A stretch of DNA of 32,000 bases from Wallemia ichthyophaga EXF-994 (lineage: Eukaryota > Fungi > Basidiomycota): the NCBI RefSeq assembly GCF_000400465.1, contig NW_008806286.1, forward strand, positions 23,865 through 55,864. Direction: 5' to 3'. Numbering within the stretch: the stretch's first letter is position 1; each line of letters opens with the position of its first letter. The translations under genes were made by a program, and so were the position numbers. Under the pieces are notes generated by a model, which made no database searches, was not told the DNA's origin, and was given only the letters and a program-made list of their open reading frames with translations. Shown piece after piece: positions 943-22,149 of this stretch.

Positions 943-1030
943 GGCAGGATGGCCGAGTGGTCTAAGGCGCACGGTTAAGGCGACAGCATCCGTGTTCGAA
1001 AGAGCGAGGGTTCGAATCCCTCTCCTGTCA
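943..1030 (+). tRNA. tRNA-Leu(AAG) with 8-nt intron (981-988)
   Basis: Acceptor GGCAGGA/TCCTGTC, D arm with TGG, anticodon stem CACGG/CCGTG, anticodon AAG at 977-979, intron after G37, variable arm TTC-GAAA-GAG, T arm GAGGG-TTCGAAT-CCCTC, discriminator A1030. Confidence 0.95.
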
Positions 1031-2640: not shown

Positions 2641-3051
2641 AGGGACTCTGAAAATGGGGTAATTAACACAGTCAAGTCGTAAAGCGACAAATTATGCAAT
2701 GTGGATAGGTCCAAGTACTTCATAGACTTTCTAGCATTCCATTTGTCTGCTGAAGAACCCCATCTACGCAATATCCACCGATTTATATTGTCCTTCTCAT
2801 AGCAGATAACAATATTAAAGCTTCAGAGATATCTCAATGATATGGATTCTCATCTCGATCACTACTTGAATATTCCAGATACTGCCAGAACATTTTAGCG
2901 TAACCAATATTGGCCTGCAAGATTTTCGGAAGTTGTAATTCGGCATGACTCAGGATCATTCAGTGTAGCAGATAAGCAGGCAATTGGTTCATTCATGAAT
3001 TCAAATCAACTAAAAAAGCCAAAGTGGACTACAAGTACCAAATACTCCTAG
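2641..3051 (+). pseudogene. Possible decayed ORF between the hydrophobins
   Basis: 137-codon frame (RDSENGVINTVKS*SDKLCNVDRSKYFIDFLAFHLSAEEPHLRNIHRFILSFS*QITILKLQRYLNDMDSHLDHYLNIPDTARTF*RNQYWPARF...) with only three internal stops in AT-rich DNA. No family recognised. Confidence 0.25.
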
Positions 3052-3339
3052 TAAACATTCTTCTAGACGCGTCTTAGTGAGAAAGACGCGTATCCAAAAC
3101 AGTAAAAGTTAGGGCCGGTGTACTTCCTGTATCTTTTGTAATACGCTTTAACAAGGTACGTTTGCCAATATTCAACGCTAACCTAATCATCAGTTGTGAA
3201 AGAGGTGACAACGCCTTCAAACCAAACGAAACCATTAATGACTCGACATGTATTCATAAAATTACAGATGCAAAATGAGTTAGTGGGGTTCTAGATTGGA
3301 CCGAGTAGACTGCCAAAGTTAGCAGTAATATCTCAAAGT

Positions 3340-3798
3340 CTAGACGATTGGGAGAGCGTCACAGCCTGTAGCGTCACGTTAGTATTGAGAAAGCACAATA
3401 AAAACATTACAACCCACCCAAACCGATGGCGGACTCATCGTCGAAGCCCTCGCAGCAGACTGGGGTGTTCTTGCACTCGTCTGTAAAGTGTTAGATTTGA
3501 TAAGGTATGAAACCTTTACGAACCCTCAACTGCAATTCCGATTAAGAGTGGAACCTGATCACATTGAACACCGACTTGGGATGCAATGTCACCGGTGGAG
3601 ATGAGGGCGTCGTTCTTGCCGGTGCTGGATTGAGCCTTCTTGTTGAGGTCGCCTTGGCAATGTGAGATAGTGTCAGGCTACACTTGTCTGATACCTACAG
3701 CACTGGATAGAGCCAGTGTTACAGGAGCCGGTCTTGGATTCCCAGCCGGCTGAAACAGAGGCGATGAGGGCGGTGGCGAAGACAGTTTGAGCGATCAT
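3340..3798 (-). CDS. Class I hydrophobin, paralog of 1324-1795 (4 exons)
   Basis: Spliced product MIAQTVFATALIASVSAGWESKTGSCNTGSIQCCDLNKKAQSSTGKNDALISTGDIASQVGVQCDQVPLLIGIAVEDECKNTPVCCEGFDDESAIGLGCDALPIV. Same 8-Cys spacing and same three intron positions. Confidence 0.93.
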
Positions 3799-15810: not shown

Positions 15811-16242
15811 ATGGCACCAAAATCAGCAGAAAAGAAGCCAGTCTCCACCGCTGGCAAGGCCCCAGCCTCTGCCACCAAGCAACCTCAAGAGGGTGGTAAG
15901 AAGACAGCTAAGGCTCCAAAGGCTGACGGCGGCGACAAGAAAAAGTCGAACAAGTCCCGCAAGGAAACATACTCGTCGTACATCTACAAGGTCCTTAAGC
16001 AGGTCCACCCAGACACTGGTATTTCCAACAAGGCTATGAGTGTCCTCAACTCGTTTGTCAACGACCTCTTCGAAAGAGTTGCTTCAGAAGCCTCCAAACT
16101 CGCATCTTACAACAAGAAGTCCACTATCTCATCCAGAGAAATTCAAACCTCTGTCCGTCTCATTCTCCCTGGTGAACTTTCAAAGCACGCCATTTCCGAA
16201 GGTACCAAGTCCGTTACCAAGTTCTCCTCATCCAAGGCTTAA
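15811..16242 (+). CDS. HTB1: Histone H2B
   Basis: [36 protein letters not shown]...[15 protein letters not shown]. Intronless. Confidence 0.98.
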
Positions 16243-16858: not shown

Positions 16859-19460
16859 ATGAGCGGATTCGACGGATTAGGCGCATCAGACGCATCAGAC
16901 GCATCAGTATTGGCCCAGTTGCATGCACTCAGCCTCCACGACAAGCCAATAGTGCGTCAAACTGAGCACACACTTGCACACGCATCCGGCACACCCAGCG
17001 TACCCAGCACCATAACATCATGGAAGATGAATGAGCACCAATACGCCAAATCCCCTAGTCCCTTCCCGACGCTAGCTCGGGGGCTATTCACGCAAGGCGA
17101 GCGTATAATCGTGCGTGGCTACGACAAATTCTTCAACGTCGACGAGGTGCCCTGGACGAGTTGGGGTGCGATAGAGAGCACAACAGCGCCGCCATACGTC
17201 CTGACGTTTAAAGAGAACGGTTGCATAATCTTTATAGCCGCGTTGACGCGCTCGAAAGTGGTAGTGACGAGCAAGCACGCGCTGGGTGGGCCGAGTGAGC
17301 AAGCGGCTGCAGCGGGAGTGGAAGAGTCGCATGCACAGGTGGGAGAGCGGTGGCTGGCAGCGCATCTGCAGCGTGCACACAAGAGAGAGGCGCAGCTAGC
17401 GGAGGTGCTGTACGACCACAGCTGGACAGCCGTTGCGGAGCTGTGCGACGACTCCTTCGAGGAGCATGTGCTGGGCTATGCGCAGGAGCGCTCTGGGTTG
17501 CATCTCCACGGGCTTAATAGCAACACGGCTGCTTTCTCAACTGCGCCTTTCGACGTCGTGCAGAGCGTGGCGGAGACGTTTGGCTTCCTTCCCACTCGCG
17601 CTCGCTCCTTTTCCTCCCTCGAGCGTGTGCGCGCTTTTGTGGGGAGCGTGCAGTCAGAAGGCGGGGTCGACGGCGAACCTATTGAGGGATTCGTCGTGCG
17701 GTGCCAGAATAAGAACAACGTACAGCTTAACAACACCCATCACTCTACAAACTCCTACTCCCACTCTCCTTTCTTCTTCAAAATCAAATTCGACGAGCCT
17801 TACCTGATGTACAGGGAGTGGCGGGAGATCACGCGCGGCCTGCTCGCCAAGCACGCAGAAGGCAAACTGGGGAGCGATGAAGGGGGCGTGCGCAAATCAA
17901 GTTACCCCGACTCAGTCGTGTATCGGGACTGGGTGCGCGGGCTAATCAGGGAGCAGCCGGCTCTATTCGCGCATTTCGGTCGCAGTAAGGGGGTAATAGC
18001 ACTGCGCGAGCGATTCCTCGCCGACGTTCAGACAGGCGAGCTCCATACCAAGCTTGCCAATGTACGCGAGACATGGGGCCGGAAGCAGAAGAGCAACGCG
18101 CAAAAAGTGAAACCGACTAAACCGAACAAGGATGAAAGGGAATTCGAGAGGACAATGATCGTCCCTATTGCGGTACCTGGCTGTGGTGGGTGTATACGAG
18201 TTGGGCGCTGCCCTTCTCTATCTCTCTCGCACACACACACTCACACTTGCTTCCCACTCTCCAGGAAAGACTGCTGTCAGTATGGCGCTCGCTAGGCTGT
18301 ACGGCTTCGGGCACACGCAGTCGGATGATGTCCAGACAAGAAAGACTGGTCCGACGTTCGAGAAGAATGTGGCGGAGCTGCTCAAGGTGCAGACACACCC
18401 AGACACACAATCGCAATCACATGCACACTCGGTCGTCATAGCCGACCGCAACAACCACATGAAGCAGCACCGCGCGCGCTTGAACAACCTCCCCTTCGAG
18501 CAGAAACCGCCGCTGGGGCGCGTGCGCATGATAGCGCTCTACTGGCCCATGGACTCATACACGCTCAACACGGTGTTGCGCGTGTGCAGCGAGCGCGTTC
18601 AGCACCGCGGTGCGCGCCACCAATCCCTCCGACCAGATGCAGATGGCGGGCAAACGCACGAGGACGTCATTGTCAACTTCATCAACCAGTTCGAGGCGCT
18701 CGATGGGAGTGCTGAGCTGTTCGATCATGTGGTAGAGCTCGGGCTGGAAGATGACCTCGGGACGGCGACGCGAAAGGCTATCGCTGGTCTGCGAGACGCC
18801 GGCGTCGATCTCAAGACAGTCACGCAGGATAGATTCATAGAGGTGCTCGACGACGTCGCCGTGTACGACCCGCAGTACAAACGACCTGACGAGCAGAATG
18901 GACTCAAGAAAAAGGTGAGGTCGACCTCACCCCGGTATTTCGCCGTGGGGGTAGAGTGTAGACTTGCGGAGCTTTGTCGGGGTATTTTGCAAGGCGAAGG
19001 ACAGCAGCAGGAGAGGCAGAAAGCGTTCCTCAACCACCTCGTGTCGCACGATAGAATAGCTAATGTCCCGCATATCACTCTCCTTCACCACAAGGAGATG
19101 GAGGGCGTGAATGAGACCGTAAAAGAGGAATACGAGGAGTGCTGGAACATGTTTAGCTCCTCTGCAAACCCCATAGACTTCAAATTCAGGGTGGATGCGC
19201 TCGTCTACAATGAGCGCGTTATGGCTTTGTCACTGTCGAGCGTCAGCGTAGAGAACCCCGCTGACACGCGCGTAAAGAGCATGGTTGAGCGTGTTATGGA
19301 GAAGAAGGTGCTGCATATCACCGTAGGCACACGCGATGCCACCGTCAATCCATTCGAGAGCAAAGCGGCGGTGGAGGAGTGGAGGCGGGGGAGTGAGCAG
19401 GTGTACGCCAGTGCGGTGCAAGGTGTCGAGCTAGGTGGCAGGCTGAGAGGAATGTTTTGA
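16859..19460 (+). CDS. TRL1: Fungal tRNA ligase (ligase-kinase-cyclic phosphodiesterase; 2 exons)
   Basis: LARGLF, RGYDKFFN, motif I FKENG, HGLN, EGFVVR and FFKIKF in the ligase domain. Intron 18186-18264 restores the P-loop AVPGCGKT. Two HxT motifs (PHITL, LHITVG) mark the CPDase domain. Confidence 0.96.
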
Positions 19461-19509
19461 GAAAATACATGTGGATGCTCTATAGAATACATAAAACGTG
19501 TTACACAAT

Positions 19510-19721
19510 CTATTTGGTCGTTCGTTAGCGGGCTCACAGCTACAGCATCCACACCGCCACCACAACAGTCAGCATTACAGACATTCAACTCGCACTCCCA
19601 CCCAATCAAGTTTGTACACGGGATTGTTAGCGGTGGGAGTATTATGTCCGCCCGTCTGTGTATTATCATCGTGTGTGCGCGTGTGCGTGTGCGTGTGTGC
19701 TGTTTAGCGTGCAGTACTCAC
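19510..19721 (-). other. 212-nt intron hosting the snoRNA (host apparently non-coding or Sec61-beta 3' UTR)
   Basis: Donor GTGAGT at 19721-19716, branch GCTAAC at 19529-19524, acceptor TAG at 19512-19510. About four times longer than most introns here. Confidence 0.7.
19569..19670 (-). ncRNA. snR70: Box C/D snoRNA, snR70/SNORD43-like (guide for SSU rRNA Cm, yeast C1639 equivalent)
   Basis: C box ATGATAA (19669-19663), guide GACGGGCGG (19656-19648), degenerate D' CATA, 8-bp stem CTCCCACC/GGTGGGAG enclosing a second rRNA-complementary element GTGTACAAA (19619-19611), D box CTGA (19572-19569). Both 9-mers are antisense to the universal SSU sequence UUUGUACAC-A-CCGCCCGUC. Confidence 0.82.
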
Positions 19722-19820
19722 TCATGGCTGTTCGGGAGCAAGAGAGAAGAATTGCACGCAGAAAGGGATAAACGCGTGAAAAACTTCAAAATAGAAAAGC
19801 AGACGAGTACAAAAGGGATT

Positions 19821-20230
19821 CTACTTTGCGAATGCTGTTGGCGTTGCAATGAGTACACGTCACCGCTCGATATACCTACTCACCCTTTACAACCTTAGCG
19901 GAGATATGTAAGAAGAATATTGAGCCAATGAACGACAAGGACAGCACGACGATGACGAACGGGTCTACCTTGAGACCGGGCGAGTCGTCGGTGTAGAGCT
20001 TGAGCATCGTCGAGGAAGAGCCACCAGCGCCAGCGGCTCTGGCTGAGTTTGGCTTGTCGAGCTGAGCTTGCTTATCGGTTCTGCGGCTGTGAGTGGCATG
20101 AGAAGGAGTGATTGTGCGTGCTAACAGCGCACAGACCGGATAGCTGCACCGTGAGGACGAGGAGGCTGAGTGGAGGACTGTGATTGGTCGGGTGAGTCGC
20201 TAGTGCTGTCTGCGTATCGTGAATTACCAT
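19821..20230 (-). CDS. SBH1: Sec61 translocon beta subunit (4 exons, ATG-only first exon)
   Basis: Spliced MSSTQPPRPHGAAIRRRTDKQAQLDKPNSARAAGAGGSSSTMLKLYTDDSPGLKVDPFVIVVLSLSFIGSIFFLHISAKVVKAFAK. First intron 20178-20227. Confidence 0.94.
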
Positions 20231-20275
20231 TTCGAGGTTTGTTCGAGTCGTATTGGCAGTTCAAAGGGAACAGCG

Positions 20276-20900
20276 ATGACGACCATCAATCGAGTCCTCA
20301 TTTTTGACAGCAACAAAGCGGAGCTGATTGTGGACTACAACAAGGACAGCGTGGATGTGGATGTACACAAAATAATTCACAAAATACCTCCAAATAACTC
20401 GAAATTGAGTTACTTGTATGGGGATTATTTGGTGAATTATGAGTCTGTGGACGGGATCATATATCTGGTTATAACGCACAAAGACTTTGATAGACAGAAA
20501 TCATTCGGTTTTATAAGCAAATTACAGCATTTGGATGACTTGAGTGATGATAGCGTTGCGAGCCTTCTAAACACTCCAACGCATCAGCTACACTCGAATA
20601 TAAATCAAGTAAAGCAAGTCATGATCGACAACGTCGACCAGATCATCAGTCGTGGTGACAGAATCGATAATCTCGTCGACAGGACTAATGACATGTCTTC
20701 TCAAGCTTTTGCGTTTAGAAAGAGGTCCACGATGCTGAGGAGACAGATGTGGTATAAGAACAAGCGTATCCAGCTGCTTACTGGGTTTGTTGGTGTTGTA
20801 AGTGGATTTTTCACATCTGAGTCAACTCTAATCAAACACCAAGCTGATGCTCTATTTATTCACGTCCACGTTCTGTGGGCTTTCATTGACACACTGCTAG
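20276..20900 (+). CDS. VAMP7: Longin R-SNARE, VAMP7-like (2 exons)
   Basis: Compact longin domain, synaptobrevin core (VKQVMIDNVDQIISRGDRIDNLVDRTNDM...RRQMWYKN), and a C-terminal TM completed after a GTAAGT...CTAAT...AAG intron. Confidence 0.88.
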
Positions 20901-21022
20901 CGTTGCTGGTGTTTATACTTGCACCTAATTGTACAATACCTTCCTTCAACTTGAACATCATTTCGACGTATAAGTTGGCTAAATTGACTGGTTCGTGTTT
21001 GTTGAGAGGATCGCAGCTGAGA

Positions 21023-22149
21023 ATGAATTTCATTACTTGTGAGCGCAGTGTGTAGCCCCCGAAACCCAACTCACTCCACAGCTCCCTCACAAACGACTCC
21101 AAAGAGACTTAATCCGCTCAGGCTACACACCTCACTCCCAACGCTCTCTCCTACCGAACAGGGCAAGCGTATAGCTGCATATGCCGCTGTGGATGCCAAC
21201 GTCAGCTTGGATTCGAGGGTGTGTTCTGTGCTACCCGCGAGAGTGCACCTACTAACAGCTCCCACTCAGGTAATAGGCATAGGCTCTGGCAGCACTGTCC
21301 CGTATGTCATAGAGAGGATCGTCCAGCAAGGAGAAGCCAACGTGCAGCGGGTGTTTATTCCAACCGGTAAGTGGCTGTGCTGGGCTTAACACAGTATTAC
21401 AACAAGACACACGCAGGCTTCCAATCGAAACAACTTATCGTGCAAAACGACCTCGTTCTCGGCGACGTCGACCAATACCCCGCGATAGACGTGACACTCG
21501 ACGGTGCCGATGAGGTGGACGGCAACCTCAACGCTTTGAAGGGCGGCGGTGCTTGTCACCTGCGGGAGAAGGTACTGGCGGAGGCCGCCAATATGTGGGA
21601 TTGCACGCACACACACACACACTCACACTCACACTCACACACTCTCAGCTTCGTCATCGTCGCCGACGAGCGCAAGAACAGCAAACTGCTCGGAACGACT
21701 TGGACGCAAGGTGTGCCTATCGAAGTAGCCCCGTTCGCGTATGCGAAAGTGCTGCAGAATGTGCAAAAACTAGGCGCTATGCGGCCCACTCTGCGGATGG
21801 GGGTGAGAAAGGCAGGACCCGTGGTAACTGATAATGGTGGGCTCAGCTTAGCGTAGTGGTTTCTGACGCTGACACACTCCACTCCCAGCAAACTTTGTCA
21901 TAGATGCGCCGTTCAGCGAGAGCTACTACCGCGATCCCAAGGAACTGCTTATGCGGATCAAGATGCTGACAGGTGTGGTGGAAGTGGGGTTGTTTTGCGG
22001 GGTGAGTTGAAGCGCATCGTCGTGCTCTTTGGTCTGACTCGCATACTTGATAGATGGCTAAAGCTGCTTACTTCGGCTACTCGAATGGCTCAGTACTCAT
22101 CCGCTCCGCTGATGGCACCGTTTGCGAGCAGGCCAGTACGCGCGAGTGA
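21023..22149 (+). CDS. RKI1: Ribose-5-phosphate isomerase A (multi-exon)
   Basis: VIGIGSGSTV, DVTLDGADEVD, KGGGACHLREK, FVIVADERK, GVPIEV, GPVVTDNG and GVVEVGLFCG motifs. Confidence 0.95.

Follow-up and report, generated by a model that had tools for sequence, protein, structure and literature searches.

The cytosine with which this study is concerned sits at the P-site codon, in the decoding center of the ribosome. In yeast 18S rRNA its 2′-O-methylation (Cm1639) is guided by the box C/D snoRNA snR70; the equivalent residues are Cm1703 in human and Cm1402 in Escherichia coli, and methylation of this site is conserved from bacteria to plants, including yeast and humans (PMC2794176, PMC11542601). 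Loss of snR70 from yeast raises frameshifting and stop codon read-through (PMC2794176). The guide of yeast snR70 is among the shortest, and its D′ box, though conserved, departs strongly from consensus; the loop of a stem between D′ and C′ stimulates methylation and pairs with the rRNA directly upstream of the target, Nop1 cross-links to the D′/stem region, and methylation rose five-fold when the loop was matched to a new target (van Nues et al. 2011, EMBO J 30:2420, PMC3116282). In most fungi, snR70 lies within an snR41-snR70-snR51 cluster (PMC3596301). An earlier survey of the fungal snoRNAome described a snoRNA repertoire with heavy apparent losses in the Wallemia lineage.

The element described here lies on the minus strand at 19672-19569 of the window, i.e., the whole 32,000-nucleotide stretch of Wallemia ichthyophaga DNA that was analyzed, and is very probably the Wallemia ortholog of yeast snR70 and of SNORD43/U43 of humans and plants. 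Its sequence features, their conservation, the covariation of three helices, the intron signals and the host gene are direct results, and it is from these that the assignment is drawn. The full minus-strand RNA of 104 nt reads ACGAUGA-UAAUAC-ACAGACGGGCGG-A-CAUA-AUA-CUCCCACC-GCUAA-CAAUC-CC-GUGUACAAA-CUU-GAUUG-GGUGGGAG-UGCGAGU-UGAAUG-UCUGU-AAUG-CUGA. A first-pass annotation of this DNA had proposed an snR70 ortholog of about 100 nt, and all the motifs that it listed are present on the minus strand where it placed them; the register of guide and D′, the conserved hairpin, the equivalence of the target site and the alignment with SNORD43 support its proposal. The guide and the second 9-mer, in the hairpin loop, each occur once in the window, for which dinucleotide shuffles predict 0.11 and 0.16 copies, and the expectation for both on the same strand within 60 nt is ∼1.7e-5 per window. 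From C to D box, the Wallemia RNA measures 104 nt, compared to ∼160 nt for yeast snR70. Both have a short D′-linked guide to the same decoding-site cytosine, a nonconsensus D′ box and an extra base-pairing loop, and in both the conserved sequence supports internal secondary structure. As exactly this design has been described for yeast snR70 (PMC3116282), the split guide is known biology rather than a new architecture, and the element is an unannotated addition to a well-known snoRNA family that leaves the known mechanism unchanged.

The C box, ACGAUGA (19666-19672), agrees with the consensus RUGAUGA at six of seven positions. Position 2 is C, A or G in Wallemia, not U: W. hederae has AAGAUGA, and AGGAUGA occurs in both W. 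mellicola and the Wallemia lineage L002. All five Wallemia lineages keep the GAUGA core without change, and it is present in most metagenome relatives, two of which have GAUGC. The first-pass annotation had placed the C box 3 nt further downstream, at ATGATAA (19669-19663); the last two bases of that motif are not conserved, and relatives have AUGAUAU or AUGAAAU.

The methylation guide GACGGGCGG (19648-19656) is complementary, by Watson-Crick pairs throughout, to 18S CCGCCCGUC. It is followed by a single spacer A (19647) and the D′ box CAUA (19643-19646), a nonconsensus motif without GA that aligns with CAGA of SNORD43 and is replaced at the same place in relatives by CAAA, CACG, CAUG or CAGA. 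Across 16 relatives, the guide is invariant except for C or U at position 3 (the 11 complete metagenome relatives and L084 have GAUGGGCGG), and its register relative to D′ is fixed and matches that of SNORD43. The 18S target UUUGUACACACCGCCCGUC is not drawn from a Wallemia 18S record but is the sequence generally known for this universally conserved part of the small-subunit rRNA; the region contains the fungal primer ITS9mun TGTACACACCGCCCGTCG, and the target cytosine is presumably the C following G in 18S ACACCGCCCGUC. Under the D′+5 rule, which the first-pass annotation applied correctly, the C following G in CCGCCCGUC lies opposite the guide base five positions upstream of D′ and corresponds to yeast C1639, human C1703 and E. 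coli C1402.

The C′ box, UGAAUG (19582-19587), is degenerate, with a conserved UGA core, and relatives have UUGAAU, UUGAUU, UUGAUA, UUGAGC or CUGAAA at the same place. Both putative internal boxes, CAUA and UGAAUG, are degenerate in sequence and conserved in position, and they stand where internal boxes are expected. The D box, CUGA (19569-19572), is invariant in all relatives. The segment preceding it was considered as a guide to a second site and rejected: its distance from the D box varies between 2 and 7 nt and it covaries with the 5′ spacer, and it is therefore read as a helix strand rather than a methylation guide. Short sense-strand resemblances also occur, between GCUAC..CGAU and UUGAAUG of the snoRNA and rRNA downstream of the target.

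SNORD43/U43 (RF00221; human Cm1703, Arabidopsis Cm1645) has the same guide, spacer A and D′ position as the Wallemia RNA, and over these its consensus GACGGGCGgACAGA lines up with GACGGGCGGACAUA of the window position by position. Both have C at guide position 3 and both are intronic (the Wallemia intron by prediction), but the SNORD43 model, at 64 nt, has no room for the D′-C′ hairpin of the Wallemia RNA. Rfam, proposed by the first-pass annotation as a check, did not recognize the element at curated thresholds: SNORD43 scored 13.5 bits against a threshold of 45. At gathering thresholds, the window and 14 related loci returned nothing but a tRNA; with E values up to 10 there was no snR70 match, and SNORD43 was the only family returned, below threshold. 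A search of the whole window with E values up to 1 gave only the tRNA and no other snoRNA, and a SNORD39 match at relaxed thresholds was discarded as spurious, being shifted off the element. The 11 other fungal relatives likewise had no Rfam match, which indicates that the models are too narrow for this test of family membership to be informative.

Between D′ and C′, the RNA forms a two-part hairpin, of which the perfect 8-bp stem in the first-pass annotation (CTCCCACC, 19639-19632, with GGTGGGAG, 19602-19595) is a part. Helix H1 pairs the 5′ arm ACUCCCACC (19632-19640) with the 3′ arm GGUGGGAGU (19594-19602) and covaries, becoming UGAACACC/GGUGUUCA in W. mellicola and, in other fungi, CUUUGCCC/GGGCAAAG. 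Helix H2 pairs CAAUC (19622-19626) with GAUUG (19603-19607) and has a compensatory change to CCGAUC/GAUCGG in W. hederae. Between the two helices, on the 5′ side, is an internal loop, GCUAA (19627-19631), which in Wallemia is GCUAA, ACUAA, GUUAA or GCUA and in other fungi is longer (AUACCAAAG). With the next C it makes GCUAAC, which resembles a splicing branch-point motif and is conserved in Wallemia.

The terminal loop, of 14 nt, holds the extra base-pairing element GUGUACAAA (DNA GTGTACAAA; 19611-19619), which is complementary to 18S UUUGUACAC, immediately 5′ of the guide target; its core, GUGUACAA, is kept in all Wallemia lineages. The two 9-mers do address contiguous rRNA, as had been claimed: the loop pairs with UUUGUACAC, the guide with CCGCCCGUC, and one A is left unpaired between them. 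The stem-loop by which membership of the snR70 family was assessed, H1 and H2 with this loop, is present and covaries across 16 sequences. That extra pairing between D′ and C′ aids methylation, also part of the earlier proposal, has been described and tested for yeast snR70 (PMC3116282).

A third helix, H3, was absent from the first description of the element. Its 5′ strand, ACAGAC (19654-19659), consists of spacer and guide bases 1 to 3 and pairs with GUCUGU (19577-19582), directly after C′. L002 has the compensatory version GUAGAU/AUCUAC and other fungi have UCGAUG/CAUCGA, and H3 occurs as a 6- to 8-bp helix over the first three or four guide bases in the window, L002, L029, L033, L034, L061, L076, L078, L114, L120, L122 and L123. 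H3 would compete with full pairing of guide and rRNA. It is unlikely, though worth stating, that H3 serves throughout the snR70 family as a functional preorganizing or autoinhibitory element, which compensatory changes have maintained from Wallemia to distant fungi. Such a role fits with the U at guide position 3 of L002 and the non-Wallemia fungi sampled, which can only wobble with rRNA but forms a Watson-Crick pair within H3. If H3 does act in this way, the free snoRNP would expose only GGGCGG and the GUGUACAA loop, the loop would dock first and the guide would then invade, and the effective guide, at ∼6 nt, would be the shortest known. Masking of the first guide bases by H3 is possibly the only point here that is both new and of general interest; a description of H3 was not found in the main text of the snR70 literature examined, and supplementary alignments may show it.

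The first-pass annotation had named a lack of conservation of boxes and guides in related genomes as part of what would refute it, and both are kept in five Wallemia lineages and in other fungi. In W. ichthyophaga, W. hederae, W. mellicola, L001 (a syntenic Logan contig) and L002 (an AT-rich metagenome contig), the element occupies the same place downstream of SBH1. The RNA is identical in four W. ichthyophaga assemblies, with polymorphisms confined to the flanks, and its body is the same in six W. mellicola assemblies, although in one of these (L012) the flank directly behind the D box is different. Identity between the window and the four relatives is 98, 82, 80 and 67% for the RNA body and 49 to 71% for the intron flanks, to be read against a baseline of ∼50% for unrelated sequence, which is our own estimate for this alignment scheme, made without a control. 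Metagenomes were scanned with a pattern of two motifs taken from the window, GGGCGGACA-N15-45-GUGUACAA. Among the matches listed, at least 12 contigs carry clear fungal relatives (11 complete, with L084 cut off by the contig end), while ∼105 of at least 118 stretches had no GAC/GAT prefix or C box and were treated as chance matches. Common to these relatives are the C box, the guide GAUGGGCGG with a single spacer A behind it, a CAnn-type D′, a two-part hairpin with the GUGUACAA loop, the UGA core of C′ and the D box, and in many of them a 5′ splice site lies just upstream.

RNAalifold, applied to seven non-Wallemia sequences, independently predicted H1, H2 and H3. A covariance model (R1) built from these seven, without any Wallemia sequence, gave a single full-length match in the window, beginning at 19672 and ending at 19569 (40.2 bits; E value of 2.5e-7), and 35 to 43 bits for the other Wallemia copies, scores that are partly circular because the relatives had been retrieved with two motifs from the window. 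In the model-based alignment of 16 sequences (A7), 97.0% of cells were paired, compared to 36 to 45% with slid partners, and 17 of 22 pairs had changes on both sides, values reached by none of 500 shuffles; as A7 is fitted to the model structure, its pairing counts are favored. A7 was used because MAFFT alignments (A2 to A4) were out of register in the helices.

Unlike snR70 in most fungi, the Wallemia element stands alone, outside an snR41-snR70-snR51 cluster, a context that typifies the family without defining it. The host is SBH1, encoding Sec61-beta (19821-20230, minus strand; several short introns; stop codon 19823-19821), which lies between the genes for tRNA ligase Trl1 (16859-19460, plus strand, one intron) and a longin SNARE (from near 20219, plus strand); histone H2B (15811-16242, plus strand), ribose-5-phosphate isomerase and a carboxylesterase are also neighbors. 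The spliced 86-amino-acid SBH1 model is 87 to 99% identical to Wallemia Sec61-beta (99% over 79% of its length for W. ichthyophaga; 87 to 88% for W. hederae and W. mellicola) and ∼70 to 76% identical to Agaricomycete proteins. Its spliced C terminus is ...HISAKVVKAFAK, and the AFAK with which the frame ends (...AKVVKAFAK) matches the Agaricomycete endings AFTK and AFSK. Public Wallemia Sec61-beta models (L003 to L013; gene at 3001-3359, 3001-3355 or 3001-3466; equivalent to about 19821-19875 on the minus strand of the window) end in ...KGE, ...KGVSNV or ...HKGHQSIIYSLFLY and seem to continue into the last coding intron; removal of this intron by splicing gives the ...AKVVKAFAK ending.

Downstream of the SBH1 stop codon, a 3′ untranslated region (3′UTR) exon of 99 nt (19722-19820) would be followed by an intron of 212 nt (19510-19721), both on the minus strand; the exon is placed by the stop and the conserved 5′ splice site. 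The intron signals are GTGAGT (19721-19716), 99 bases after the stop and 49 nt before the element, the branch motif CTAAC (19528-19524), 44 nt after the D box, and TAG (19512-19510). Across the five Wallemia lineages, GTRNGT is found 39 to 49 nt before the C box and CTAAC, then YAG, 34 to 63 nt after the D box, giving intron lengths of 191 to 229 nt. The position of the stop codon and these signals together place the element within a predicted SBH1 3′UTR intron, splicing of which is suggested by the conserved signals, and not in a free-standing gene, as the first-pass annotation had treated it. The exon junction would thus fall well after the SBH1 stop codon (19510-19823, minus strand), and the last SBH1 exon would run antisense to the 3′ end of the tRNA ligase gene. 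In many eukaryotes, an exon junction well 3′ of the stop codon marks a transcript for nonsense-mediated decay. The 3′UTR layout would couple snoRNA output to SBH1 transcription and possibly to such decay, and it suggests that a core modification guide can shift from an ancestral noncoding cluster to the 3′UTR intron of a protein-coding gene.

SBH1 was also considered as the host across Basidiomycota, and this was rejected: the SBH1 loci of Coprinopsis, Serendipita and Exidia lack the guide-plus-loop pair, and a covariance model search of these three Agaricomycete loci found no match within 10 kb. The head-to-head pair of longin SNARE and SBH1 genes is common to Wallemia and to the Agaricomycetes Serendipita and Exidia (L015, 8990-10578; L016, 8180-10643; about 19821-21055 in the window), and within this conserved pair the snoRNA intron was found only in Wallemia.

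Some intron-encoded box C/D snoRNAs, known from vertebrate and yeast work, rely on external stems formed by the flanking intron. In the Wallemia element, too, the flanks are complementary and would bring the C and D boxes together in the place of a terminal stem next to the boxes. A CA-rich 5′ flank (19673-19702) and a GU-rich 3′ flank (19542-19568) form a duplex of −27.1 kcal/mol, the external stem that had been predicted from the first inspection. The stem is unusually long (∼10 to 20 bp) in comparison with those of other such snoRNAs, is CA/GT low-complexity sequence in W. ichthyophaga and differs in sequence in each species. Flank complementarity is nonetheless kept in the five Wallemia lineages, with duplexes of −11 to −27 kcal/mol that beat 95 to 100% of shuffles; most non-Wallemia relatives have no external stem, and a long one occurs only in Wallemia. 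Low-complexity runs of CA/CG type (CACACGCACAC...) are frequent in the introns of this genome and are read as THTHTH or SHSHSH in mechanical open reading frames (ORFs), e.g., at about 18250-18300 and 21590-21640 (plus strand) and at 19673-19702 (minus strand); one CA-type run, with its GT-rich partner, is the external stem of the snoRNA.

For the expression, processing route, snoRNP assembly and activity of the element, we propose the following on the basis of sequence and of the yeast precedent. Transcription of SBH1 pre-mRNA would yield the snoRNA within the 212-nt 3′UTR intron, which would be spliced out, debranched and trimmed by exonucleases back to the snoRNP. The external stem would juxtapose the C box ACGAUGA and the D box CUGA, and the resulting C/D kink-turn would bind Snu13, Nop58, Nop56 and Nop1/fibrillarin. 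In the free RNA, H3 (ACAGAC/GUCUGU) would close guide bases 1 to 3 and would have to open for full guide pairing. At the base of helix 44, the guide GACGGGCGG would then pair with 18S CCGCCCGUC. In this register, the base five positions upstream of the D′ box CAUA would face the cytosine equivalent to yeast C1639 and E. coli C1402, which could receive the 2′-O-methyl group. The two-part D′-C′ hairpin would present its loop GUGUACAAA to the nine rRNA bases just 5′ of the guide site, with a single A remaining unpaired between the guide and loop duplexes, and the loop duplex may lend stability to the guide duplex, which is very short; such stabilization has been shown for yeast snR70.

Three other explanations of the locus can be weighed against a methylating snR70 ortholog. 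The element could be a genuine snR70-family snoRNA that does not methylate the C1639 equivalent and acts instead as a chaperone of rRNA folding or at another site, either because a D′ box without GA (CAUA) is too degenerate or because H3 keeps the guide partly closed. Neither D′ nor C′ conforms to consensus, H3, which covaries, overlaps guide bases 1 to 3 or 1 to 4, and in the fungal snoRNAome paper the D′ guide of snR70 has five possible targets by prediction. Yeast snR70, however, binds core proteins and directs methylation with a divergent D′ box (PMC3116282), the register of guide and D′ is fixed in the 16 relatives and shared with SNORD43, and methylation of the site itself is conserved from bacteria to plants (PMC2794176, PMC11542601). 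We consider this variant improbable.

Still less probable is a structured cis-element of the SBH1 3′UTR intron, acting in splicing or mRNA stability, that makes no stable RNA and resembles rRNA by accident. An intron 99 nt downstream of the stop codon could indeed control SBH1 mRNA through nonsense-mediated decay, but at least 12 other fungal contigs carry this RNA layout in unrelated contexts, three Agaricomycete SBH1 loci lack the element, and a cis role leaves two exact 9-mers to adjacent rRNA and the C, D, C′ and D′ boxes unexplained. As for a protein-coding gene, there is a mechanical ORF of 154 amino acids (19205-19669, minus strand) that begins at the ATG inside the box, and the likelihood that it marks a coding start is negligible. 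A Pfam search of the ORF gave no match, and its frame is broken by stop codons within 8 to 21 codons in W. hederae, W. mellicola and L002, which refutes this explanation; the first-pass claim that the element is absent from any real ORF therefore holds. Most of the ORF is, moreover, antisense to tRNA ligase coding sequence, and the substitution pattern fits paired RNA helices rather than codons. An snR70 ortholog that guides methylation of the decoding-site cytosine is thus the favored reading.

The presence of this guide in Wallemia, a xerophilic and halophilic basidiomycete lineage in which the Rfam models fail, fills an annotation gap, and the 16-sequence alignment offers a broader model for locating the snR70 family in fungi. 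The tRNA recovered by Rfam (943-1030, plus strand; 48.3 bits, 88 nt) was missed by ARAGORN; from its sequence it resembles a tRNA-Leu of class II (anticodon AAG), with a short intron following the anticodon loop and a terminator formed by a T run. Public Wallemia models also join the longin SNARE and ribose-5-phosphate isomerase in one protein of 473 to 559 amino acids (L003, 972-2948; L004, 1082-2955; L008, 782-2940; about 20219-21856 on the plus strand of the window). The Coprinopsis SNARE is a separate protein of 225 amino acids, and the joining in Wallemia may reflect either a genuine fusion or two genes merged in annotation.
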